DNA of 64,000 bases from Podarcis vaucheri (taxonomy: Eukaryota), in the NCBI GenBank assembly GCA_965113315.1, contig OZ220365.1. One strand, 5' to 3'. The position numbers were made by a program, and so were the translations under genes. This document shows positions 1 to 61,378 of this stretch, piece after piece. Numbering within the stretch: the stretch's first letter is position 1; every line of letters begins with the position of its first letter. The notes beneath the pieces are model-generated. The model saw only the letters and a list, made by a program, of their open reading frames with translations. It was not told the DNA's origin and ran no database searches.

Positions 1-2057
1 GGATCATTCTGGGGACATGAGAGGCTTTTGGACACCAGGAGAAACATCACTACTGTTGCCGTGGTTATCCTGTTTCACAATTGTTTTGCTGCCCCTCCCA
101 GGACTAATCTACTGGCACAGGAGGCATGTTTTGGGCTATAAACATGTACACAGAGATAAAAAATGTGTGTGTGTGTGTGTGTGTGTGTGTGTCTTCTGAC
201 ATTAAGGAATGAATTTTCAAACATAATTCTTTTTTATGAAGGATGACTAAATGCATGAAATCAGAATGTTGACTAGAGTTACTTTTTCCCCATTGGGTTT
301 TCTTCAACATAAACAATCTATGATAGAAGTCTCTGTTGCTGAATTGTGTAACAATTTTGTAATTTTCATTGGGTTTAGTGTCTTTGTAAAGACCTTCTAG
401 CAGATTTTACTAGCACAGTAAAAAAGAAAAGAAAAGAAACCCTGTAATGGTTGGATGAGTCTGCATATGGTTTACTGTAATTAGCAATTGTAATTTGCTT
501 GTGCAATGCATGGATCTTGACAAAAAAGTTATTCATGCAGCAAAATTCCTTGTTAACAAATTCTAATGTGTTCTATTTTGTTATACTTCACTATAGCAAC
601 TTATAGCATCTTTTAGGAGACTGATCACTACTATGAAGGAAGGGAAATTACAGTAGTTTACTATATATTGGATTAAAAGGCAGGTCTTGAAACATCTTTG
701 CCATTGGATTCTTCTGGAAAAGAGGCAAGCCAATATGAAAAGATAATTAGATGATAAAATAAGAAAAACTGAATTAAGCACTGCAGGTTATCGGTGCTTA
801 TAAGCAATTCATCCACAGTGCATTAGTGAATTACATGCACATCTTTGATGCGTGCTTGTTTTATATATCAGCACACACAAGCCCTATTATTTAACTTGTA
901 ACAAATAGTCCTCCTGAAGAAAAAAACCCAAGGTCTATTTTTCAGCAGTTATTCCGTATAATTAAAAATAACAGGGTTATATTTTTCCACACAGAGTTTT
1001 ATTAGAACAATAATGGCTTCAGGATTGCTTGTTCAATTAAAAACAGAAGAGCTTGCGATCCTGTTTGCTTGACCAAGCGCATTCTGAGAGGGGGCAGTTG
1101 GGAGCGAAAGGAAAAAGCCATATTCAGCAATGTAGAAGATCCCCAGGTAAACCTTCCTGGCATCTCCAGTTAACGATTCTTAGAAAACTCTTTAATGGTA
1201 GAGGTTGATAAGCTGCTGTCAGATACTGCTGAGCAACAGAGACCAGTAATTTGCATCAGTATAAAGAAGCTTCAAACCTTCACTACCAATAGGTTTGATC
1301 CAGACTAATTTAGCACTGCATTTATTCCATGAAAAACACTGGGACATATTAGTCAGGGTAACCCAAGTGCTGCCTTGCAGATGTTGTTGGACATAGTTTG
1401 TCTCCCTTGTTGAGGACAGGTCAATCTAAACTGACTAAGGAGATCCATCCATATGGTTCCATTCCAGACATCCTCATTGAGGGTACAATCTCCAGGCCCT
1501 CTCGTTGGTCATGTGAAAGATTGGCTCTACCCCTCTCACACTGGAAATAAGCTGACATCAGAGAGGGAGCTCTGATGCCAGAACCTCCCTTTAACAGCAC
1601 TGCCTCCTCTGATTCCATAGGCCAACTGGTGTCAGATCTCTCATACTGATGGGGCCCAGGGCATTCTGGGAATAGGACCCAAAGTCTTCCAATCTCCTAG
1701 AACCTGCTACCATCCCAAATTCTGAGGAAGGGCAAGTGAGGCACAGAGCTGAGGATATCTAAATCTCTCACACACCTTCCCTTCCTTTGTTTTGAGTGGA
1801 AGGGGGCGGGGAATACAAGTTACAAAAAATATAAGGTTGATCACGTCCATATTTCTACTTTGAGAGCAGAGCCCAGCAGGCTATTGGATAAAGATGCTAA
1901 CTGCCTTTGTATCTCTCCCATCCCCCCCCCCCGGATAAATCCTTGATAACAGGTAAAAATATTGCGTGTTGAGTCCCACAAAGCCACCCCCCACCAAAAA
2001 ATTCACACTTCACGCGTCATTTTTGTTTAAGGTTTTTGGCATAATTTTGGCCACAAC

Positions 2058-2063
2058 TTTATT
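2058..2063 (-). terminator. Polyadenylation signal AATAAA of the element
   Basis: AATAAA(A)GTTGTGGCC lies just downstream of the structured region in both this element and the 59.6-kb copy. Confidence 0.7.
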
Positions 2064-2075
2064 CAATACAAAATA

Positions 2076-2419
2076 TGTGAGTGGTTGCTTAGGCATTGGT
2101 TTGACTATCTGTCCATGCCCAGGGACAGTGCTGACTTCCGGATTCCAGCGGAAGCCAGCTTGGGAAACAAGTATTGGGTGAGAAAATATGAAGCTGGGTA
2201 TCAGTCCCTCACTTCTCACCCTCATGTTCCTGTGGGGCTTACCCGGCCCAAGTCCGACTCCGGGGACAAGGACGAAAGGATGGTAAGCCCCTGGATTCCT
2301 TTAACGGAATTCCCTTTCCGCACCACCATTGGAGGGGTAGGCACTTACCCCTCCATCCACCATTTTTAACCAATGCCTAACCGCCATGGAGCCCTAAGCT
2401 CTCCGCCAAACCACTCACA
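2076..2419 (-). ncRNA. Putative cis-acting multi-helix RNA element in the retrotransposon 3' UTR
   Basis: 2076-2101 is complementary to 2368-2380 and 2409-2419 and encloses about six hairpins. The same fold is seen at 59682-59998. Confidence 0.65.
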
Positions 2420-2989
2420 AACCCAGCCAAGACTTTAGCTTAGCTATCACTGCACCCAGCCACACCTTATTTCCCACGGCCGAAAGATGCACCCCATCAT
2501 CCCTAAACAGCGATGCCTCCTGAAAGCGAATCTCCGGATGTGCAATCACATCACCTCCCAGCTCAAAAACCTTTTTTGAGACAGCAGAATTAATCCGCTT
2601 TCTGACCCTTTCAGTGGCATCCGGGCAACGACTGCCCCTCCAAACACGGCGTTGCAAAAACTTTGACCAAAATATCTTTGCTGCCGGCACCATTGCACGC
2701 AGCACCTCCAGGTCCCTTAAAATCGCAGCACGCAAGGAAAAACAGTCCATGGAGACCAGGTCGTTCTCACCCAGCTGAATCACAATGGCCGCGGGCGGCC
2801 GTTCCACGCCCAACTGCCTCCTCACCAGTGGCAGAAACTCTGGCCATGACATTCCCCTTCTGGTCAGCCAAGAGACGTGCACGTGTGGAGAAAGACCGAG
2901 ACCTGGTCCCAATCCAAATCGCTGGGCCTCAACGCCGGCCCAATGCACGATGCTGTGCCCCACCATCCAGATGCGGACAGCCGCTAAAC
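2415..2989 (-). CDS. SGNH/GDSL-family hydrolase (esterase) domain
   Basis: Block I WMVGHS (GDS-like Ser), block III QLGENDL, block V DGVHL. No ATG ahead of block I except the Met inside it; preceded by a pyrimidine tract and CAG at 2992-2990. Confidence 0.88.
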
Positions 2990-3029
2990 CTGAGGTGAAT
3001 AAACAAAACAAATGTAAGAATATGAAATG

Positions 3030-4000
3030 TTAACGAACATAGTCTCTGAACGCGTCGGATTTCCAGCGGCCCAAATCCTTTATTCTGCTGGCTGACAGCC
3101 CCCAGTGCGCCGCTGTTGTGGCAGCACCAATCCTAAAAGAGTGGGGGGCAAAACCATGCGCCGAGCCACCGCAAGCCTTAATGGCCTTCCGCATCACCAA
3201 TGCAAACTGGCGTCTGGACAGAGGCAAACCATTCTCGTGCCTCAACAAGGGGCCATCCCCTGGAGCTCGGACAGCCAGGTACCTCCTTACATCCTTGACC
3301 GGGCAAGGTCCCGCCTCCCCTGTAGCCGGAAGCCGAATAAGGGCTCCCCTACCCTGTTGGTCAGTTTTCGAATTCCTAATCATAAGTCTCAGCTCCATTG
3401 GGGATAGCTGTACGTCCTGTAGCAATAAACCCCTGGAACGGCCAACCCTGTGCTCCTCCAACACAAGTTCACCAACCCTTAGGGCCCCAAAGAAGGCGAT
3501 AGAAAAGGCTGCGGAAAAAAGGCGAGCCTCATACCCAGACCAGCAAAGCTTCCTCAATTCCTTGCGCATCTTACACAGCAGGTCGAAGGATATTGGGTGC
3601 CGTGCGGCTGGTTGGGGAGGACAAAGTCTACCCCACCCTTCAAGGGCCTTACGCACCACAAACTTCGCGCAAGGATCCTTGTCAAATAAAGATTTACTGA
3701 AAAAGGCAATGGCGGCTGCCTGGATCCTTATCGTCTTGACTGCACGTCCCAACTGAAACAGGTGCGTCAAATATCTTAGCACCTGAGAGGATGAGGGAGA
3801 AGCCCTCATCTCCTCCCCTACCGACTGATATGTAAAGGCCAGAAAATCAGTCCAAGCTTTTCTGTATGATCTGAGGGTAGAAGAGGAAACAGAAGCAGCT
3901 ACTCCCTGAAAAACTAATTCCTGCCAAGGCTCCAGAGATGATCCGGGAAATATTCCGGACGTAACCGAGCCTCTGGAACCAGAAGTCTGAACCGCTCCAT
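3030..4000 (-). CDS. Tyrosine recombinase (integrase)
   Basis: AFFGALRVGE (catalytic R), SKTDQ (K), HSFRIGAAT (HxxR), LGRWKSDAFRDY (W/Y). The frame is open to 4019, upstream of the called ATG at 3809, and includes the typical N-terminal motif WQELV...STLRSYRKAWTDF. Confidence 0.95.
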
Positions 4001-5733
4001 CTGAAAACGGGACAGAGCATCAGCAATTTCATTAGACACTCCGGGGACAAAACGTGCAGAAAACACGATATTATAGCGTAAGCAATATAAAACAAAAACA
4101 CGCAAAAGGGCCGACACCCTAGGAGAGCGGGACGACAGCTTGGCCAGCACGTTCACTACCGCCAGGTTATCGGTCCAGAAGCAAACACGTCGGTCCCTGA
4201 ACTCATCGACCCACAAGTGCACTGCCACTGCAATGGGAAAGAACTCAAGAAAAGTTAGATCCCGCGTAATGTCTGTCCCTTGCCACTCCAGTGGCCAACG
4301 CATGGCACACCATCTTCCTTTCCAATAAAGACCGAAACCTTGTGAACCTGCGGCATCTGAATGCACCTGAAAGTCATTATGCAAGTTCAACGTGTCTTGC
4401 CATAACGACACCCCATTGAATTCTTCCAAGAATTCGAGCCAAATGCTGAGATCAGCCCGCACTTCTCTAGATAAACGGACCCGATGATGTGGGGCCTTCA
4501 AACCCACGGTAAGCCGGGCCAGGCGTGAACAAAAGGGGCGTCCAGGGGCCACCACCCTGCACGCGGAATTCAGGTGACCCAGCAGCGATTGAATCTGTCT
4601 AAGGGACACTTTCTCCAAAGGGAGCAATTCCTCAATGACCGTCTTCAAAGCAACCAGCTTATCCTTTGGCAAGCTGGAAGTTTGGGACACCGTATCCAAT
4701 AGGATACCCAGGTAAGTAAGTTGGGTTGCGGGGCCCTCTGTCTTGTCCGCTGCTAGCGGAACCCCCAGCTCCTGCGTAAGGTCAGCGAAAGCATGCAGCA
4801 ACACCGAGCAATTGCCAGAGTCACAATCTGAGGCCAATAAAAAATCATCCAAATAATGAGTGACCCCGCCCAGCCCGGTTTTCTGCTTGATGGCCCACTC
4901 CAAGAAGGTGCTGAACGACTCAAAGGCGGCACATGCTATCGAGCAGCCCATAGGCATGGCCTTGTCAAAATAAAATTTGCCCTCGAACCGAAAGCCTAGG
5001 AGCCAAAAATCCTCCGGGTGAATAGGCAATAATCGAAAAGCCGATTCGATATCGCATTTCGCCAATAAAGCAGCCCGTCCAAATTTTCGAATCATCTTAA
5101 TTGCATAATCAAGGGAGGCATACTTTACTGAGCAAAGTTCCTGAGGAATCACATCGTTGACCGAGGAACCCCTAGGATGCGATAGATTATGAATTAGACG
5201 AAATTCGCCAGGGGCCTTCTTTGGCACAATACCCAATGGTGATATGTGCAAATTGTGAAAAGGTGGGGCACAAAAGGGGCCCGCCATCCGATGCATGGAC
5301 ACTTCCTTAGCAATCTTTTTCCGGGCGATTTCAGGTAATTCACGAACTGACTTTTGATTAGGAGGATTCCGTGCCACGGGAGGCATGGCTACCGGAATCC
5401 GAAAGCCCACAGAAAAACCATCACTTAAGTAACTTGCAGCAGTCCTGTTGGGGTAAGATTGCAGCCAAATTTTAAGAGCCGGCAATCGTACCGGGGTGTG
5501 GGCCAATGATGTCAACACACTATTTTGCTGCTCCTGAGGTTGAAGGGAGGGGAGGGGCCGATTTGGGGGGTTGCTGAGAACCCCCTCTGCCTCCACGAAA
5601 GGGCCGCCTACCGCCAAAGCAAGAGGAAGCAGGATGCGATCCATTACACTTCTCGCAAATGTGTGCAAATCTACAGGCTGGACGCTGGCAAGAACCCCTA
5701 TTAAAGTCCCAGCATAACAAACGACGGCCAGAT
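3914..5733 (-). CDS. Reverse transcriptase + RNase H (DIRS/Ngaro type), overlapping the gag 3' end in another frame
   Basis: RT motifs SPLGIVPKK, FRLIHNLS, KCDIESAFR, MPMGCS, HYLDDFL, YLGI. RNase H motifs HSDAAG, FLEFFPI, WTDN, NEIADALSR. First ATG at 5644; frame is open upstream through a candidate acceptor at 5733. Confidence 0.95.
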
Positions 5734-7046
5734 CTGAAAGCCGAAAACTTCGGCTTCTGTTGCTCAGGCACTTTTTTATCTATCAGTGGAGCCACATGAG
5801 TAGTCCACACATCAAGATCCTTTCGATCCCAGCGGGCTGAGGGGATCTTGGCAGCGCGACGCCTGAAATTCTCATCATATTTGATCGCCGCCTTTTCTCC
5901 AGCCTTGGAGAATGCGGAGCGCACAATAGATAGATAAACTAACAGATGAAGGGACCTCCGTGGATAGGCTGCCACTACCACACCAGCAAAGACCTGGAAA
6001 CAGTCGAGCCAATGCTCGAAAGTCCTGACCACCGCAGAGGCCCCTGTACGCTTTTTGGATGAAGAACTTTCCTTTTCTTGATCCTCTGAAGGTGGGAGCA
6101 ATTTGAACATATCTACGTAGCGGCCATTTAAGATTCTGGACCGCAATTTTGACGACAAATGCGATCCCGGTATGATGTCCCTGGCGGAGTTGGTTGATAC
6201 TTTAACGTCAGGAACCAACACGCCATCTATACATTCTAGGACTGCTCCATATTGAGCTCTATGAGTGTTGGACCTTCGTTCCCAAGCCCACCTTGGAAGT
6301 CCAGAAACCGATTCGCCAAAACCCCAGTAAAGTTGCATATTACTACCCTCATCATCGGAACTAGACGAAGACGTACCAGAATGAGAGGAAGAAGTGTCGT
6401 CCCTCCTCCTCTTGGCGCGCTTCCGAGATGACTTCTTCTGGCGACGTTTTCCTCCCAATGACTTCCTGGCGGGTACAGGAAGGCTGTCTTCGACAGATGA
6501 CTCAGATTCGGGCTCCAGCTGAGATGGAACTGAAACAGACTGCACAGAGACAGCACGTGAGATGCCAGAACCCGAGGCCACCGCCACCGAATGCTGGGCG
6601 GACGCGCGCCTGCGAGTCGAATCTACCGAAGGGGCGCTTCTTCCTGAGGCCCTCCTAGTGGAGCGGCCTGACCGCCGAGGTTGACCCCGGCCTGCAGGTA
6701 AGACAGGGGACTGGGATAACTGGGGGTTCACAATCAAACCACCGGATGAAGACCCTTCTCCCCCATCTTCACTAGATGATGGTGAAGCCGGAGACGACGC
6801 CAACGCAGCAGGATGCTGCCTTCCAGACGTGGACGGCTGGGCGGAGCAGTGCTGCAAGAAACCATCCATCTCAGCTGCAAAGCGAGAAAGTGCTGCGGGG
6901 TCACCAGCCATGCTCGCCACCAATGACTGTACCCGCCCCACTGGTTGTCTAGCAGAAGGTGAGCGGAGCGCCTGGGATGGGCCTTTAATCGGCCGTTTTG
7001 CAGCGGTGGCAGGGCTGGAACGATTGGCGACCTTCTTCGGAGCCAT
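5520..7046 (-). CDS. Gag-like ORF1 (~508 aa): Ser/Arg-rich basic N-terminal half and C-terminal Cys/His zinc finger
   Basis: ATG at 7046 (MAPKK...). Basic cluster KRRQKKSSRKRAKRRR. Core W..YDENFRRRAA...RWD..D.D.W and finger CWDFNRGSCQRPACRFAHICEKCNGSHPASSC, typical of DIRS/Ngaro ORF1. Confidence 0.88.
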   Translation of the reverse strand: MAPKKVANRSSPATAAKRPIKGPSQALRSPSARQPVGRVQSLVASMAGDPAALSRFAAEMDGFLQHCSAQPSTSGRQHPAALASSPASPSSSEDGGEGSSSGGLIVNPQLSQSPVLPAGRGQPRRSGRSTRRASGRSAPSVDSTRRRASAQHSVAVASGSGISRAVSVQSVSVPSQLEPESESSVEDSLPVPARKSLGGKRRQKKSSRKRAKRRRDDTSSSHSGTSSSSSDDEGSNMQLYWGFGESVSGLPRWAWERRSNTHRAQYGAVLECIDGVLVPDVKVSTNSARDIIPGSHLSSKLRSRILNGRYVDMFKLLPPSEDQEKESSSSKKRTGASAVVRTFEHWLDCFQVFAGVVVAAYPRRSLHLLVYLSIVRSAFSKAGEKAAIKYDENFRRRAAKIPSARWDRKDLDVWTTHVAPLIDKKVPEQQKPKFSAFRSGRRLLCWDFNRGSCQRPACRFAHICEKCNGSHPASSCFGGRRPFRGGRGGSQQPPKSAPPLPSTSGAAK

Positions 7047-7559
7047 ACCTGCTAGCCGGAGATAAATCAAAACCAGTTAAACTTCACCAACCACCAAGAT
7101 TTTTTTTTTTAAATTATTTATTTATTTTATTTTATATATTTATATATAATAAGTTATTTATTTTAGATTATCAAATATATTTATTTATTTATTTAGGAAT
7201 AAACTAATACAATAAACAGTACAGTCTATTCACTGGTCAATTCGAGCAATACTTGAAGCAAAACAAACAATATTATAAGGTGGGTAAGTAACCCTATCTA
7301 TCTATCTATCTATTTCCTTCCTGACGTTACTTCAGGTATTTGACAATTAACTTGCAAAAACTTGGGCCAGGCTGCGGGGCTTCACAGCCAGGCCTGTGGG
7401 TGTAATACCCAAAGCGGCCTATAAAGAGGCCAGCTAGGCCGGTCCTATGAGAAAGGGGCGCAATGCCACTCTGAACCACTGGAGGGAGCCTGGTTTTACC
7501 AGGGCGCAATAGCGAAAAGCCGCCACTAGAGGGCCTGCAGCACCAATAGCCAGCCAGCA

Positions 7560-8300
7560 GGCACCCCTCGATCGGAATGTGCGCTTCCAAAATGGCGGGC
7601 CTCCCTCAATTACGCAGCAAAATTGCTGCTTTCTTTTGGAGTTGCACCTTCCGGGCGCTCAGCCCAGCCCAAGGCCCCGCTGGCGGGGAGCCGCGCAATC
7701 GCGGGGCTCGGGGGCTAAGGCGAATCCCCCGCTTCCCCGGCCTCGTCACCCTGCGCGCTCGACGAGGCCGCCCGAGCGTGAAACGCCGCCCCGGAGGGCG
7801 CGAGGTGCCCACCCAGCGGGAAGGCCCGGGCCGCGCCGTACAAAAGGCCCCAGGCGCTGGGCGGCCAATGCGCGCCGCCGCGAACAGGCAGGCCGCGCGG
7901 GAACCCCAACGAGAGGAGGCCTCGCAAAGCCCAACGGCAGGCGTCTCCCCCCACCGCAGCCCCGCAAAAACGGGCCAGTCCACGGAGCCGGGAAGAAGGG
8001 AACCACCACCCCGGCCCCGAGCTGGACGTGGCCTGCGGAGACTGTCCGCCACCCGGACTTCCAGGTAAGGGCTGCCGCGGTAGGCGGAGGAAAGGAGCCC
8101 CGAGGCGACCCGCGGCTCCGGAGCCGCCCGCGAATAAAATATAGGGGGGTGGGGGAGGTTGCCGCGGCCTAATTAGAGAGCTAAAAATCCCCTCACAGGC
8201 CGCACGCCGGGGCTTCCGTTCCGCCGGAATCGGGCCCGCAACTCGTGCGGGGAGGCTTCGCCTCCCCGGGCTGGGGGGGGGGTCCCCACCCTCAGCCAAG
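7560..8300. promoter_or_regulatory. CpG island in the element's 5' leader
   Basis: Very GC- and CpG-rich relative to the flanks; YY1-type AAAATGGCG at ~7589-7597. Confidence 0.6.
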
Positions 8301-8545
8301 CTTTTAAAGACAACTTCAGGGGATATAAACTAAACTCAGAGAACAGCTGAGAAATAGAAAAAATGGGGAGGCAAGGGAAAAGCGCAGAAGGGAGAAGAAA
8401 TCGGGGGGGGGAGGAACGAAGGGCACAGAAAGAAGGGATAGGACAAAAGGCAATAATTCGTCTTAATATACAACCAACTCCCGACTCCAATGCTCCGTGA
8501 TCCGTTGCAGAAGCCGAGAGGACGCTCTAGTGTTAGGCGTCCTGC

Positions 8546-8552
8546 ATTTATA
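8546..8552 (-). promoter_or_regulatory. TATA box of the element's internal promoter
   Basis: TATAAAT 159 nt inside the 5' end; the relative has TATTTAA 167 nt inside its 5' end (60681-60687). Confidence 0.55.
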
Positions 8553-8859
8553 CCCTCGGCTCCCTCCTCCAAGATTTGCAACATCCAAAACTCCCCAGTA
8601 ACCCAGATTAACCCCTTATGGGCTTGGTTTCCCAAATCTGCCTAGCAACGACAGGGTGGCTTTTATTTCCCCAACCGCAACACGTGCTCTCATTTCAAGG
8701 AGAACACGATTTACAGTAATGCTGCAACTTGTGCACATTTAGTGTTACATGCACGACAAAAAAGTAAAAGGGGGTTGGGTTCTAGGAAAAATTACTTTGG
8801 CAAGCTCCCCACCACAGACAAACCCCACACGGCATTGAACCCAATGAGTTTTGACTGTA

Positions 8860-9123
8860 CAGTAGTACCTCAGGTTAAGTACTTAATTTGTTCTGGAGGT
8901 CCGTCCTTTTTTTTTTTTAATGATATTTATTGAAAAACTGGAGGTCCGTTCTTAACCTGAAACTGTTCTTATGGGGCCTCCCACTGCTGCCGCACCACCA
9001 GAGCATGATTTCTGTTCTCATCCTGAAGCAAAGTTCTTAACCTGAAGCACTATTTCTGGGTTAGCGGAGTCTGTAACCTGAAGCATATGTAACCTGAAGT
9101 GTATGTAACCCGAGGTACCACTG
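8860..9123. mobile_element. Tc1/mariner-pogo-type MITE
   Basis: TA-CAGT(A/G)GTACCTC ... GAGGTACCACTG-TA terminal inverted repeats. Confidence 0.85.
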
Positions 9124-9679
9124 TATGTAATTTGGCTTTAGGAGTGATCCCCTTGCATAAGTTGTGGGCCTGCTGTAGAGCTGGGGACAGACGTCTGCCT
9201 GAAGCCCTGGACAACGGGTAGCAGAAACAGAGCCTCAGGGACACCATAGGGGAAGCCACAACTATGATTTAGAATGGAGCATGTGAGGTGGGGGTGGGGT
9301 GCCGAATATTAGCATCACGCAATGCGCTGCTGAAATTTGAGACCCCAAGTTCAGCTGCTGTGGGTAGCCAATGTGGTGCCCTTCGGAAGCTGTTTGATTA
9401 AACTCCCATCAGCCCCAGTCAGTATGACCTATCGTTGAGGGAGACCGGAGTTCTAGTTGAGCAACATCTGGAACGCACCACTCTGGCATTCCATGCCTTA
9501 AAGGCTTTGTAAACCCTGAAAACTTTTACTTCAGATGAAAGTGGAATGAGCAGGTACACAGTGAACAGTAATCCTCCTTTCAAATCCCCTTGAATATTTG
9601 GAGTGGGAGGCAGGGAACTATAATTTCTCCAACAATCATAGCCATTATAAGGGTATGTGGGCCATACCTGTGAGTATGG

Positions 9680-9680
<1 letters not shown>

Positions 9681-9728
<48 letters not shown>
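9681..9728. repeat. (AAT)n microsatellite
   Basis: Seen directly; similar tracts at 17176, 19901, 29546 and 62527; (GT)n at 164, (GGA)n at 42688, (CT)n(GT)n at 51843, (GGGA)n at 60580. Confidence 0.95.
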
Positions 9729-10001
9729 TCATATAATCCATCTCCCAAAAGCCATGATGTTCACAACACTGTGGATCTAACAACTGGATCGATATTGTTC
9801 TGAACTTACGTTAGATAACATTTTCATGTATTTTTTTAGAAGCAGAAAACATCACCAGCATTAGGGAAGATTAAAGAATGTGGGTGTTAAATAATAACCA
9901 CAGTGACTGCCTATGACCTGACATTCTTCCCTGCCCGATGTGGTCAGGGTGTAACTTGGTAATTATAATTGGTATTTGTGGCAATTTATAATTGTCACTG
10001 A

Positions 10002-10171
10002 ACTTAGTTTGCAAAACTTTTCGGACTAAGCATGCAGTGACAAGAAAAGTACATGAAGGCTTGTTTAGCTTGTCAAGAGATTTGACTGCACTTAGTTTGC
10101 AAAACTTTTCGGACTAAGCATGCAGTGACAAGAAAAGTACATGAAGGCTTGTTTAGCTTGTCAAGAGATTT
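10002..10171. repeat. 82-bp direct duplication, period 88
   Basis: 10002-10083 is identical to 10090-10171. Confidence 0.9.
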
Positions 10172-11014
10172 AGGAATGTACTCTAGTTGGTCTTCCTCTC
10201 AATCTGAGTTTGGGATAATTTATTCATTAGTTGGAGAGCGCAGTAATTTGAATGCACCATTACAAGAATGCAGATATTGCTATCTGCTACTTTCCAGAAA
10301 TCTTGCCTCCAGTGTATGCTTCATTTATATAGATGGTGATTATGTTTTATTGATTAAAATCTTTAAAAATGCATGGCACAGGGTTTACATAATGGGAAAA
10401 TTAAGCACGCATTTTAACAGAATAACTTCTTTTTCAGGTGATTAGCAGTGGCTTTTAGCAGTAAGCAGCTGTAAACATTTTCAGTAATAATAAGCAAATG
10501 TTGCAGTAATACAGGAAATGCAAACTATATTAAAAGACTGCACTTATCAAAGGAACATGTCCTGCACCACCTCTTTTCCATTTTGTAGCTGCAATAGATA
10601 AATATTTTTTTCCCCAAAATGCAAAGAGTATCTGTGCTACCTTTGGAGTTATTTCATACTTGGAATGTTATATAAAGCTATGGTCAATGTTCTGCCCCGC
10701 AATGGACAAAATAGTGGGGCCAAGTCACTTCGGCAGACCGGTACAGAGAGGGGAGGGACGCAACAACGACTAGGTCACCCCGGGGACAACATGTCAGCAG
10801 GAGTTCCAGATTGGCTGTGCCAGCACATTTGCATCTGCACTGACTCCGCCTCTTTCCCCATCCAAATTCCAGTATTGTTACAAGTGTCTGAATGGATCCC
10901 ACAGGATCACTGCTCACTGGGTCCCTCAAACATCCACCTCCCAGAGGGTGATGGTATTTTTTGCTGAAACCATACGTTCATATTACCTTCACAACACTGC
11001 TTCCACTGGGTCTA

Positions 11015-11231
11015 CAGTGGTACTTCGGGTTACATACACTTCAGGTTACATACGCTTCAGGTTACAGACTCCGCTAACCCAGAAATAGTACCTCGGGTTA
11101 AGAACTTTGCTTCAGGATGAGAACAGAAATCGTGCTCTGGCGGCACAGCGGCAGCAGGAGGCCACATTAGCTAAAGTGGTGCTTCAGGTTAAGAACAGAT
11201 TCAAGTTAAGAACGGACCTCTGGAACAAATT
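11015..11231. mobile_element. Same MITE family as 8860-9123, opposite orientation, one end truncated
   Basis: Reverse complement of the 8860-9123 sequence; TA-CAGTGGTAC start. Confidence 0.8.
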
Positions 11232-59572: not shown

Positions 59573-60854
59573 TTGCGTGTGAGGACCCCCAAACCCCCTC
59601 CAAAATAAACCACACAGGACACAGAATATTTGTTTAAGATTTTTGGCATTAATTTGGCCACAACTTTTATTGATTACAGCATGTGAGTGGTTGCTTAGGC
59701 ATTGGTTCGGACTACCTGAACCTGCACCAGCAGGAACAGGACTGACAACTGGAACCTCCAGAGGTCAGTAAGGGAAAACATACTGGAGGAGCACAGAGGC
59801 AGATTTCCGCCTCTTAATTCACCCCCAGATGCTCCCAGGAACTCTGGCTTGGCCCTACCCCTGAGAGGGGATCGGACAGAGCAAATCGAGCCCCTGGATT
59901 CCTTTAACAGAATTCCCTAGCAGCAGCAACAAAAATGAGGGGCAGGCACAGCCAATCCATAATCCCCTCCACCAAAGAATGAACCAATGCCTAACCACTA
60001 ACCTTACAAAGTTGTGACAATTTGCTACACAGTAGGCAAAAACCAATAAAGAAGGACCATAAAGAAGGCTGATCATCGAAGAATTGATGCTTTTGAATTA
60101 TGGTGCTAGAGGAGACTCTTGAGAGTCCCATGGACTGCAAGAAGATCAAACCTCTCCATTCTGAAGGAAATCAGCCCTGAGTGCTCACTGGAAGGACAGA
60201 ACCTGAAGCTGAGGCTCCAGTACTTTGGCCACCTCATGAGAAGAGAAGACTCCCTGGAAAAGACCCTGAAGTTGGGAAAGATTGAGGGCACAAGGAGAAG
60301 GGGACAATAGAGGACGAGATGGTTGGACAGTGTTCTCGAAGCTACCAGCATGAGTTTGACCAAACTGCGGGAGGCAGTGGAAGACAGGAGTGCCTGGCGT
60401 GCTCTGGTCCATGGGGTCACAAAGAGTTGGACATGACTAAACGACTAAACAACAACAGGCAAAAACCAAATGGCACCAGCCAATCAGCCAAGTGGCAAAA
60501 TTCCTAACGGGCCCCTGCTCCAAAAACAGACAACCCCTAGACAGGCATAGCAAGGTCAAAAACACAACCTTAAATTATAGGGAGGGAGGGAGGGAGGGAG
60601 GGAGGGAGGGAGGGAGGGAGGGAGGGAGGGAGATCTGCTGCATGATGCAAAAGAGAAAGTACTTCATCTTGTGCAGCCCCTTAAATAGCCCCTTAGTTGC
60701 CAATCAAACCCCAACTGACAGGAAATTTACCCCAGCAACAAAGGGGCAACCAATGAGGTGCAGAGGTCATCCAAATAGGCCCGCCCCAGCAACAAGAAGG
60801 CAGTTTGGTGATCTCACCGCAACAGTGGCTCTCCATGATTTGGAGGACACGATT
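59573..60854 (-). mobile_element. ORF-less relative of the Ngaro-like element (non-autonomous derivative or solo repeat unit), interrupted by Bov-B
   Basis: Shares both termini, the polyA region, the 26-nt stem arm tgtgagtggttgcttaggcattggtt and a 29/30-nt core (59889-59918 vs 2286-2315) with the 1961-8711 element. Confidence 0.85.
60047..60456 (+). mobile_element. Bov-B (RTE) LINE, 5'-truncated 3' end
   Basis: RVPWTARRSNLSILKEISPECSLEG...QYFGHLMRR, (CAA)n tail, 13-bp TSD aggcaaaaaccaa at 60034-60046 and 60457-60469. Confidence 0.92.
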
Positions 60855-61378
60855 TAGCAAGGAGGCACCAGAGATTGTTAAGAGTGTTCAGGGTGGAGCC
60901 CCATTCTTTTAAGACTCCAGTTCAGAGGGAACTAGCTGGACTTGGCAGCAGCTGATAACTTTAAGGTCATTTAAAAGCATACATACGTATTTTACATCAC
61001 ATTATGTGAATTGCTTAGAGTGTTGTTGTTGTTTTATTAAACAGCATATAAATATTGTTAATTAAATAAACAAAAATGCATTATATGAAGGAAAATTGTT
61101 CTGCAAAAATGTGTGTATTTTCAAAATTGCATACAAAAATGTGTATATTAGGAGAAATTGCACTAAAACCATGAATTTTCATGAGGACTTTTTTAAAAAA
61201 AAATAATCACAGGCTAATGTGGGAATGTGGAGAATTGAACCTACGAATGGAAAAATTGGAAATTGAAATTAACAGATTCACCCATTCCTATTCATAATAA
61301 TTGTTTCCTGAGATGCGGGAGGTTAGAATACCTATCCATTGCAACTCCCTTCCAAGTTTGTGATTCTGTGCAAATGTA

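Follow-up and report, generated by a model that had tools for sequence, protein, structure and literature searches.

A folded 3′ domain in a lizard Ngaro-type retrotransposon and its probable core motif in mollusc-like relatives

Retrotransposons that use a tyrosine recombinase are the least understood retrotransposon order, and a structured module at their 3′ end could fill a gap among their cis-acting signals. A stretch of 64,000 nucleotides from the lizard Podarcis vaucheri (contig OZ220365.1, assembly GCA_965113315.1; hereafter the window) raises the question of whether such a module exists, whether it is selected as a folded strand, and what it might do for the element that carries it. 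The domain concerned runs along the minus strand from 2419 to 2076, beginning at the stop codon of an SGNH hydrolase ORF (UGA, 2417-2415), which sits within its first stem, and ending 12 nt short of an AAUAAA hexamer (2063-2058).

Judged by its coding content, the host element is a member of the Ngaro superfamily (DIRS order), with an RT/RNase H, a tyrosine recombinase in place of a DDE integrase, and an SGNH ORF. The ORF order (Gag-like, RT/RNase H, tyrosine recombinase, SGNH) is that of the known Ngaro elements with an SGNH ORF, among which PMC9210276, citing Goodwin and Poulter 2004, places Xenopus DIRS-53_XT and DIRS-54_XT. The RT/RNase H ORF exceeds the Pfam cut-off for RVT_1 (E 3.2e-12, 47 bits), while the recombinase and SGNH ORFs fall below theirs (Phage_integrase, E 4.7e-5, 23.7 bits against a cut-off of 27.1; Lipase_GDSL_2, E 2e-4); homologues of the SGNH ORF carry PF13472, with proteins 62-79% identical in Podarcis and Lacerta. 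Relatives of the element occur in lizards, an amphisbaenian, a newt and molluscs, and the extra SGNH ORF after the recombinase, present here, is a trait of the vertebrate and mollusc lineage. Against metagenomic Ngaro-like loci, the lizard RT is 34-48% identical, and its YR ORF is 30-37% identical to those of related loci over about 250 aa; an alignment of SGNH to viral contigs found no relative. The element ends at about 8711 and 1962, that is, outside the 3′ domain. No split direct repeats (A1-[ORFs]-B1-A2-B2) and no ITR/ICR were found in the lizard copy at any sensitivity tried, and its 5′ and 3′ non-coding parts have no direct repeat in common; the published consensus of DIRS-54_XT is likewise reported without split direct repeats.

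Structurally, the multi-helix fold that had been claimed for the domain was recovered, the minimum free energy (MFE) structure consisting of an outer stem, a second closing stem and six hairpin arms (Table 1). Comparison with dinucleotide shuffles, a control named in the original prediction, went clearly in favour of the fold in both copies of the domain held by the window (z of −6.4 and −6.0): copy 1 reaches −157.2 kcal/mol (z −6.38) and copy 2 reaches −147.8 kcal/mol (z −6.03), with 0/100 shuffles as stable. The outer stem, P1, has 11 bp in the lizard and encloses both a short core and a 290-nt insertion. Beyond the domain, the GU-rich tail probably includes a downstream poly(A) element and the terminus of the element.

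Table 1. Features of the two lizard copies and of the host element; arms and stems of copy 1 are given in the order of the minus-strand transcript.
Feature	Position	Strand	Basis or remark
ORFs upstream of SGNH, same element	3030..7070	(-)	ORF list, Pfam
Gag-like ORF with CCCH finger and RGG tail	7070-5520	(-)	
RT/RNase H ORF	5668-3914	(-)	
Tyrosine recombinase ORF	3809-3030	(-)	
SGNH/GDSL hydrolase ORF, last ORF of the element	2415..3011	(-)	ORF list, Pfam, homologues
P1 5′ strand, UGUGAGUGGUU	2409..2419	(-)	pairs with 2086-2076; MFE and centroid, sequence
5′ G box UGGCGGA, mostly unpaired	2402..2408	(-)	corresponds to the box (UGGGG or UGGCGG) of metagenomic Ngaro loci
P2 hairpin GAGCU-UAG-GGCUC	2389..2401	(-)	fold; fits positional descriptor; missing in copy 2
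3′ box CA-UGGCGG	2381..2388	(-)	best conserved segment of the core when loci are compared
P3 closing stem, 5′ strand, UUAGGCAUUGGUU	2368..2380	(-)	pairs with 2101-2089; invariant in copy 2
Arm a, GGAGGGGUA / UACCCCUCC	2331..2354	(-)	fold
Arm b, hairpin with GUUAAA loop and bulged A	2293..2313	(-)	fold; 20/21 nt identical in copy 2
Arm c, GGGGCUUACC ... GGUAAGCCCC, with inner hairpin	2234..2291	(-)	fold
Arm d, long hairpin, core GGGUGAGAA / UUCUCACCC	2163..2230	(-)	fold
Arm e, GCUGGCUUCCG / CGGAAGUCAGC	2130..2159	(-)	fold
Arm f, CUGUCC / GGACAG	2109..2128	(-)	fold
P3 closing stem, 3′ strand, AACCAAUGCCUAA	2089..2101	(-)	fold
P1 3′ strand, AACCACUCACA	2076..2086	(-)	fold
AAUAAA hexamer, 12 nt beyond P1	2058..2063	(-)	sequence; conserved in copy 2
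Poly(A)-proximal conserved motif, UGUGGCCAAAAUUAUGCCA	2037..2055	(-)	common to copy 2 and locus L001
GU-rich tail to the 3′ limit of inter-copy similarity (…CACGCAA)	1962..2036	(-)	
Copy 2 domain, ORF-less derivative	59682..59998	(-)	same closing stem and six arms; no P2
Copy 2 AAUAAA (59671-59666), poly(A)-proximal motif (59662-59644) and tail	59573..59671	(-)	

In the ORF-less second copy, the bundle of hairpins is retained together with the poly(A) region and termini. In the predicted folds its closing stem and six arms recur in the same order as in copy 1, as the original prediction had it, and the near-invariance asserted for the closing stem and the GUUAAA-loop hairpin was also borne out, both being identical in the two copies save for one C to U change that turns a C-G pair into U-G. 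The domain interior is 61% identical between copies, with 110 substitutions (39% divergence), and the observed stability of copy 2 per nucleotide (−0.473 kcal/mol per nt) equals that of copy 1, whereas a drift simulation in which the same substitutions were randomly placed on copy 1 gave −0.337 ± 0.029 (z −4.7, 0/300). Copy 2 does not have the first small hairpin (2408-2381 in copy 1) and so lacks P2 along with the two G boxes; thus, either the core is dispensable in copies mobilised in trans, or copy 2 is dead. Copy 2 also carries an insert of ~410 nt (60045-60460) with no other copy within the window, which may resemble the tail of a BovB/RTE LINE.

The covariation between the two copies that had been claimed was not borne out. 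In a MAFFT alignment, 7 pairs stayed paired although both sides had changed, against 5-8 in controls slid by 1-3 columns, and 38 of the 116 copy-1 pairs were broken at the aligned copy-2 columns; RNAalifold on the same alignment gave a poor consensus, and two sequences (n = 2 lizard copies) give such a comparison no statistical support. Since the column-wise counts were no higher than those of the slid controls, we discarded pairwise covariation as evidence. The variable arms are conserved as hairpins at matching places, not as alignable compensatory columns. An exact scan with a 21-mer of the closing stem gave 0 matches in metagenome contigs and 0 in genome contigs.

Beyond the lizard, the comparison turns on the core, a layout of outer stem P1, 5′ G box, hairpin P2 and then UGGCGG (2419-2381 in copy 1). 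This layout was recognised by eye in about 26 of 35 metagenomic mollusc-like Ngaro RT-YR-SGNH loci; in every case it lay on the sense strand, shortly 3′ of the last ORF. Statistically, P2 stood out in a shuffle test of 17 representatives (Fisher p 1.5e-13), and in a covariance-model alignment (A10) its cells were paired in 95.6% of cases versus 64.9% when shuffled, 7 of 8 pairs were changed on both sides, and the covariation score was 0.667 versus 0.141 for shuffled alignments (0/500) and at most 0.118 for slid controls. A descriptor of the core (a hairpin of at least 5 bp, then 1-3 nt and UGGC(G)(G), with a G box no more than 7 nt upstream) matched these loci 3.6 times per kb within 150 nt after the stop codon versus 0.09 times per kb elsewhere or on the antisense strand, a 40-fold positional enrichment. 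The lizard core fits the descriptor (UGGCGGA, GAGCU-UAG-GGCUC, CA, UGGCGG), as one of 4 strict matches in 128 kb of window, and also fits the position rule, being on the sense strand and no more than about 150 nt past the stop codon of the last ORF. Most families have an enclosing P1, of unrelated sequence; it closes 5-15 nt past the box in most loci, unlike the lizard P1 with its 290-nt insertion.

Model-based searches reached less far. MAFFT failed to register the core motifs across families, and a three-sequence ungapped seed was used instead; the second-round covariance model (R2), dominated by AU-rich bivalve-type hairpins with 8-bp stems, was too specific, finding neither the lizard site nor GC-type loci at a significant E-value. 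With filters off, it scored the lizard P2 (2408-2380) at only 10.5 bits (E about 7), amid chance matches, and it also misses L001, L003 and L027. The exact lizard GUUAAA hairpin and closing stem are absent from all 35 loci, and blastn-short with both lizard domains against these loci returned only chance matches of 12-17 nt. From pattern and position, we consider it probable that the lizard hairpin belongs to the mollusc-type core motif.

Two of the related loci bear on how the core and the hairpin bundle fit together. L001, whose SGNH protein is 74% identical to one from the gastropod Gigantopelta aegis, is laid out as in the lizard: UGAGUGGU at the stop codon, P2, then UGUGGCGGG, a closed multi-hairpin domain of ~340 nt (z −3.6), and AUUAAA with the motif GGCCAA-NN-UUAU-N-CCA, which occurs in none of the other loci. 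It has no arm sequence in common with the lizard, its P2 lies outside the closed domain, and no enclosing P1 was found there. L031, in turn, is the only one of the 35 loci to show a split direct repeat within the available DNA (272-890 = 1975-2593), and its repeat B begins directly after the box, at the boundary between GGCGG and AAAAAA. The core would thus sit where LTR retrotransposons keep the polypurine tract, their plus-strand primer, a placement seen in L031 as the sole locus with repeats, the lizard copy having none. In L031, repeat B includes the 3′ strand of P1 but not the 5′ strand, so that P1 can form at B1 and not at B2. Given a closed hairpin fold with a mollusc-like core at its start, the lizard domain is probably a real, hitherto undescribed cis-acting element; no structured 3′ element or cis-acting RNA signal of such kind is described in the Ngaro and DIRS literature searched.

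As to the strand on which the fold acts, z is about −6 on both strands and also with DNA energy parameters, and z-scores are therefore unable to assign it. The MFE of the sense fold is 14-30 kcal/mol lower than that of the antisense fold, and the counts of G-U pairs (sense versus antisense: 16 versus 2 in copy 2, 16 versus 4 in L001, 7 versus 5 in copy 1) favour the sense strand.

The broader proposal of the original prediction, selection on a folded single strand, is therefore upheld in part: the z-scores, the drift simulation, the layout of L001 and the covariation of the mollusc-like core speak for it, whereas the pairwise covariation of the lizard copies, equal to controls, does not. We infer, with a probability of roughly 45%, that the module is a 3′ untranslated cis signal for replication of the element, acting as folded sense-strand RNA. 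Structurally, it comprises two layers, the first being the core, made up of P1 from the SGNH stop, the unpaired G box, P2 and UGGCGG, and the second a six-hairpin bundle of roughly 290 nt with its own invariant stem, placed between UGGCGG and the returning P1 strand and ending just ahead of AAUAAA. The unpaired G boxes around P2 would be read by an element protein, for which the RT/RNase H or the Gag-like protein, with its CCCH finger and RGG tail, are candidates, and the core may mark the start or a transfer point of DNA synthesis, with the hairpin bundle as a scaffold that would keep P1 shut and present the invariant GUUAAA hairpin. RT recruitment, priming and packaging are all plausible candidate functions. 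A more specific scheme strikes us as rather unlikely, namely that the G-box core is the missing DNA-synthesis start or transfer site of Ngaro, read by RT/RNase H or a CCCH-RGG Gag and fixing the 5′ edge of repeat B, that the genomic A-int-B-A-B arrangement represents a circle with two LTRs (LTR = B-A) which the recombinase has opened at a B/A junction, and that the 300-nt bundle of lizard/gastropod-type elements is an expansion of this site. If the core were such a site, the DIRS order would gain its first defined cis replication signal together with a replication scheme.

Instead of a replication signal, the module could be a post-transcriptional element of the mRNA, serving nuclear export, stability or poly(A)-site control, a possibility to which we give some weight, on the doubtful side. 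The domain does fill the interval from the last stop codon to a point 12 nt short of the AAUAAA hexamer, no part of the tail is better conserved than the poly(A) region, which even L001 shares, and P1 forms only where the domain follows the ORFs (in L031, at B1 but not at B2), so it could decide the use of the nearby AAUAAA. The module can be compared with the constitutive transport element (CTE) found in simian type D retroviruses, the RNA transport element (RTE) of mouse IAP and the hepadnaviral PRE, whose outline its closed multi-hairpin shape of 300-340 nt resembles. However, no sequence or Rfam match to known export or regulatory elements was found, and such a role leaves unexplained why a core with G boxes should lie exactly at the repeat boundary. 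That same boundary in L031 would suit a structure acting at the DNA level, either folded single-stranded cDNA or duplex inverted repeats serving the tyrosine recombinase as a site (for circle resolution, integration or the junction of internal region and repeat B), and the z of about −6 for the antisense strand and for DNA parameters is compatible with it. Tyrosine recombinases read folded recombination sites such as integron attC, and the free stem sequence with fixed flanks is reminiscent of these. Moreover, DIRS-1 amplifies through linear single-stranded cDNA, and such intermediates are documented (PMC7192593). Nevertheless, we hold a DNA-level structure to be unlikely, as many G-U pairs of the sense strand would be A-C mismatches in minus-strand cDNA, the P2 stems of 5-9 bp with loops of 3-4 nt are unlike the usual recombinase core with its spacer of 6-8 bp, and the ends of the element are not at the domain.

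That the module has no selected function is harder to sustain. A GC-/GU-rich tail might fold by chance, or hairpins might arise from mutational processes such as template switching, with the copies alike through descent, and this would agree with inter-copy column covariation no higher than in controls, with the sample of two lizard copies and with the loss of the core hairpin in copy 2. We regard it as very improbable in view of the z of about −6 versus dinucleotide shuffles in both copies, the stability kept across 39% divergence, the matching layout of a mollusc-like element whose arm sequences are unrelated, and the core covariation and 40-fold positional enrichment in mollusc-like loci. 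Ribozymes occur in other retrotransposon orders, and the closing stem contains GCAUUGG/CCAAUGC, which matches the acceptor stem of vertebrate tRNA-Gly(GCC). Even so, the ribozyme once suggested for this domain, or any known RNA class within the 3′ UTR (tRNA-like, snoRNA, miRNA precursor), found no support and is scarcely credible: Rfam 15 (4227 families, ribozymes included, E up to 1), run on the element, copy 2 and 17 related loci, yielded chance-level matches only (best scores 19.9 bits against a gathering threshold of 58.6, and 18.7 bits against 45), with nothing on the core motif in the 17 loci, and ARAGORN found 0 tRNA genes in the window.

The module offers a concrete object for questions of RT or Gag binding, priming, packaging, export and poly(A) control, and also a marker with which to annotate the 3′ ends of Ngaro elements that have no visible repeats. 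Were it only a stabilising UTR, the result would be a modest one.

Among known systems, the polypurine tract of LTR retrotransposons and retroviruses is G-rich and directly precedes the downstream repeat, and the RT/RNase H of Ngaro is related to that of LTR elements. The likeness is the G-rich box directly before repeat B, seen in one locus (L031); the Ngaro boxes, however, include U and C and lie on either side of a base-paired hairpin that a further stem encloses, whereas a simple RNase H-resistant primer would not require a conserved fold. With the CTE, the IAP RTE and the hepadnaviral PRE, the lizard domain has in common that a structured domain of some hundred nucleotides follows the last ORF and precedes the signals for the 3′ end, but neither its sequence nor Rfam shows any similarity to them. 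Stringent-type LINEs and their partner SINEs carry 3′ stem-loops that, according to PMC5135761, are recognised by the LINE reverse transcriptase. Here, as there, a retrotransposon RNA bears a conserved structure at its 3′ end, an ORF-less derivative retains it, and recognition in cis or by a partner is presumed; there is no sequence relation, and the LINE/SINE structures are single short hairpins of target-primed elements, adjoining their poly(A) or 3′ repeat, whereas the lizard element, which uses a recombinase, has a closed domain of 340 nt with a G-box core. Reverse transcription of DIRS-1 has no known primer (PMC7192593), and because of this a 3′ hairpin of its mRNA has been proposed as a self-primer (Poulter and Goodwin, as cited in PMC7192593). 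As described there, it too is a 3′ RNA structure in a DIRS-order element, but a 14-nt feature at the RNA end, while the lizard structure lies within the 3′ UTR, is far larger and has a poly(A) signal after it. What is new here is a Ngaro 3′ core layout, absent from Rfam, in which the lizard element resembles its mollusc-like relatives.

The lacertid lizard sequence carries, on its minus strand, a four-ORF element whose ORF order (Table), judged by sequence, is that of hydrolase-carrying Ngaro-type DIRS-order retrotransposons, for which a matching order is known from amphibians (PMC9210276). The Gag-like ORF has a CCCH zinc finger (C-x8-C-x5-C-x3-H) near its C-terminus, and this finger region is the sole part of Gag that could be aligned to mollusc-like loci. 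Proteins 62-79% identical to the SGNH hydrolase occur in Podarcis muralis, P. lilfordi and Lacerta agilis, with weaker homologues in Rhineura and Lissotriton. The lizard copy (1962-8711, minus strand) has neither split direct repeats nor a long ITR/ICR. About 150 nt into the element from its 5' end (near 8550) stands a TATA-like box; between it and the start of Gag, the sequence is rich in CpG at 8300-7400 and then AT-rich and of low complexity at 7330-7100. Past AAUAAA, a GU-rich tail stays conserved as far as about 1962, so that the RNA probably stops ~80-90 nt short of the end of the DNA element. Such an RNA would be without both DNA ends, which a copy of this kind would have to regenerate. 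Adjoining the 5' end is an inverted repeat (8941-9125 / 11013-11220; 158 nt, 91% complementary, plus shorter arms) with an 87-nt tandem duplication inside it (9997-10171); the whole (8941-11220) has the look of a fold-back or MITE-like element in its own right.

Features of the lizard element and of its folded 3' domain
Feature	Position	Strand	Basis or remark
Gag-like ORF	7070-5520	-	CCCH finger (residues 453-470), RGG-rich tail
RT/RNase H	5668-3914	-	RVT_1, E 3e-12
Tyrosine recombinase	3809-3030	-	Phage_integrase, E 5e-5
SGNH/GDSL hydrolase	3011-2415	-	last ORF, adjoins 3' domain
P1 (outer stem)	2419-2409 with 2086-2076	-	minimum-energy and centroid folds
P2 (small hairpin)	2401-2389	-	minimum-energy and centroid folds
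P3 (second closing stem)	2380-2368 with 2101-2089	-	minimum-energy and centroid folds
Six hairpin arms	enclosed by P3	-	minimum-energy and centroid folds

The 3' domain (2419-2076; copy 1) starts on the hydrolase stop codon UGA (2417-2415) and ends 12 nt 5' of AAUAAA (2063-2058), and the multi-helix fold of the original prediction was recovered by both folding methods. In the comparison with dinucleotide shuffles that had been set for it, the minimum free energy was −157.2 kcal/mol against −120.6 ± 5.7 (z = −6.38, 0/100 shuffles as good). The relative at 59998-59682 (minus strand; copy 2) has, as had been claimed, the matching helices in matching order, with an identical P3, six arms and z = −6.03, and the GUUAAA-loop hairpin, described with the closing stem as near-invariant, differs at a single position, where C has become U and a wobble pair is kept. 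The interiors of the two domains differ by 110 substitutions and 24 gap columns, at an identity of only 61%. When the same number and kind of substitutions were placed randomly on copy 1, stability fell to −0.337 ± 0.029 kcal/mol per nt, compared with −0.473 for copy 2 (z = −4.7, 0/300), which, with the shuffles, argues that the predicted fold is real and beyond chance, its stability held through heavy sequence turnover and probably under selection. The SGNH stop codon sits within the first stem, and termination of translation there would require the ribosome to open P1. P3 contains GCAUUGG/CCAAUGC, invariant between the copies, which equals the acceptor stem of vertebrate tRNA-Gly(GCC); this likeness may be chance, as ARAGORN and Rfam find no tRNA.

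Pairwise covariation between the two copies, which had also been claimed, did not withstand its control. With the fold of either copy projected on a MAFFT alignment, doubly changed kept pairs numbered 7, against 5-8 when the partner was slid by 1-3 columns, and a third of the pairs were broken at aligned columns. Covariation between the copies is not demonstrable with two sequences; in the predicted folds, the arms are kept as hairpins at corresponding places and not as alignable compensatory columns, and one of them (arm e) uses shifted registers of similar sequence in the two copies. Pattern scans for the closing stem gave 0 matches in metagenome and prokaryote contig collections.

Copy 2 sits in an ORF-less derivative (59573-60856, minus strand) of a diverged family member, with ~45 nt of SGNH-like sequence directly 5' of the domain and an unrelated insert of ~410 nt (60045-60460) that may resemble a BovB/RTE LINE tail. 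The 5' part of the derivative ends near 60856, is weakly like the 5' end of copy 1 (44 nt, E 0.04) and has a TATA-like box and a (CCCT)n run (60640-60580). The bundle of arms, the poly(A) region and the tail are retained, whereas P2 and both of its flanking boxes are missing through what looks like a 28-nt deletion between two GGUU repeats.

Alignment of SGNH proteins retrieved 35 metagenomic loci in which RT, recombinase and SGNH follow the order of the lizard element, with the Gag finger in some, so that we regard them as Ngaro-like elements. Named relatives of two of the loci are, by sequence, molluscan (Gigantopelta aegis, 74%, for L001; Mercenaria, Ruditapes and Mactra for L012). About 26 of the 35 carry, on the sense strand 3' of the last stop codon, a core motif that is a new result: P1, an unpaired G box (UGGGG; UGGCGG in locus L002), P2, 1-3 nt, UGGC (UGGCGG in most) and, past a short spacer, the second strand of P1. 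The P2 stem varies freely, with some eleven unrelated sequences made of GC pairs, of AU pairs or of both, and in 17 representatives it exceeded shuffled inter-box segments with a combined p of 1.5e-13. A covariance model seeded from three ungapped sequences picked out 18 sites, spread over 8 sequence families, each with the expected position and strand; pairing held in 95.6% of cells (64.9% shuffled), 7/8 pairs had changes on both sides, and the covariation score was 0.667 against 0.141 shuffled (0/500) and at most 0.118 in slid controls. A simple descriptor of P2 and its boxes had 3.6 matches/kb within 150 nt 3' of the stop, against 0.09/kb elsewhere and antisense. In one locus (L027:3346-3380), the core lies 3' of the recombinase stop, with the SGNH ORF ~900 nt further downstream; the motif thus does not depend on adjoining the hydrolase gene itself. 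Another, mollusc-like contig (L008:1-5496) has a further Gag and RT ~1.5 kb 3' of the SGNH stop and core, which suggests head-to-tail Ngaro units.

At 2408-2381, the lizard copy has UGGCGGA directly after P1, then GAGCU-UAG-GGCUC, then CA-UGGCGG. In its strict form, the descriptor matches 4 times over both strands of the window (128 kb), once at the lizard core. The covariance model gives the site 10.5 bits (E about 7), and this model, dominated by AU-rich bivalve-type hairpins, also misses GC-type loci, L001, L003 and L027; membership, on pattern and position, is therefore probable, not proven. On this reading, the lizard structure would be the common core, with a hairpin bundle of ~290 nt set in after the UGGCGG box and before P1 returns.

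The gastropod-like L001, whose RT and SGNH are 47% and 41% identical to those of the lizard element, carries at its stop codon (L001:3087-3094) the octamer UGAGUGGU that is also at the lizard stop (2409-2419, minus strand), followed by P2, UGUGGCGGG and a closed, GC-rich domain, ~340 nt long, that folds into six to seven hairpins (z = −3.6). Beyond the domain come AUUAAA and the motif GGCCAA-NN-UUAU-N-CCA, which stands just 3' of AAUAAA in both lizard copies (2055-2037; 59662-59644) and is absent from the remaining loci of the 35. Compared with the lizard, the closing stem begins at the UGGCGG box itself, with P2 outside it, and the arms have no detectable sequence in common. The whole 3' layout thus looks homologous, with hairpin sequences fully turned over, and the bundle, as predicted for L001, is not confined to the lizard. 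This shared layout is a new result, and the comparison is the strongest argument in our analysis for structural selection on the large domain; of the originally proposed selection on RNA or ssDNA structure, kept stability and the L001 layout support the claim, but pairwise covariation no longer counts as evidence.

Since z is near −6 on both strands, with RNA or DNA parameters, it cannot assign the strand. G-U pairs, however, number 16 in the sense fold against 2 in the antisense fold of copy 2 (16 vs 4 in L001, 7 vs 5 in copy 1), the sense fold is 14-30 kcal/mol more stable, and C to U changes between the copies create G-U pairs on the sense strand; allowing for a G+U-rich composition, this favours action as sense RNA. 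The same G-U pairs speak against a recombinase site in folded cDNA or in duplex DNA. Structure without function is opposed by the shuffles, the drift simulation and the mollusc relatives. An unrecognised ribozyme, as once suggested, or a tRNA-like RNA finds no support, with no Rfam match for the element, copy 2 or the core in related loci, and no ARAGORN tRNA in the window. The less likely reading of an element for export, stability or poly(A) choice agrees well with the place of the domain next to AAUAAA and with P1 being able, in the split-repeat arrangement A1-ORFs-B1-A2-B2, to form solely in the B1 context.

Most likely, the 3' module would act in cis, as a signal within the RNA of the element itself, in which conserved unpaired G boxes, positioned by P1 and P2, form a putative protein-binding platform; candidate readers are the element's RT/RNase H and the Gag-like protein with its CCCH finger and RGG tail. 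For DIRS-1, the reverse-transcription primer is reported as unknown, and a 3' hairpin has been suggested (PMC7192593). No description of a structured 3' element in Ngaro was found in the accessible Ngaro and DIRS literature. Among the 35 loci, only the bivalve-like L031 has split direct repeats within the available sequence (272-890 = 1975-2593; at least 619 nt, 100% identical). The repeat starts directly after GGCGG. Repeat B opens with the P1 3' strand and does not include the P1 5' strand, the G box or P2; the sequence 5' of the second repeat copy (…UUUUAGCGGG) is similar to the box. The Ngaro genomic form A-int-B-A-B could be seen as a two-LTR circle (LTR = B-A) opened at a B|A junction, and DNA synthesis would then start or transfer at the core, 5' of repeat B, as this one locus and reasoning suggest. 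In LTR elements, the polypurine tract sits immediately 5' of the downstream repeat, and the core, in L031 alone, likewise lies immediately 5' of repeat B.
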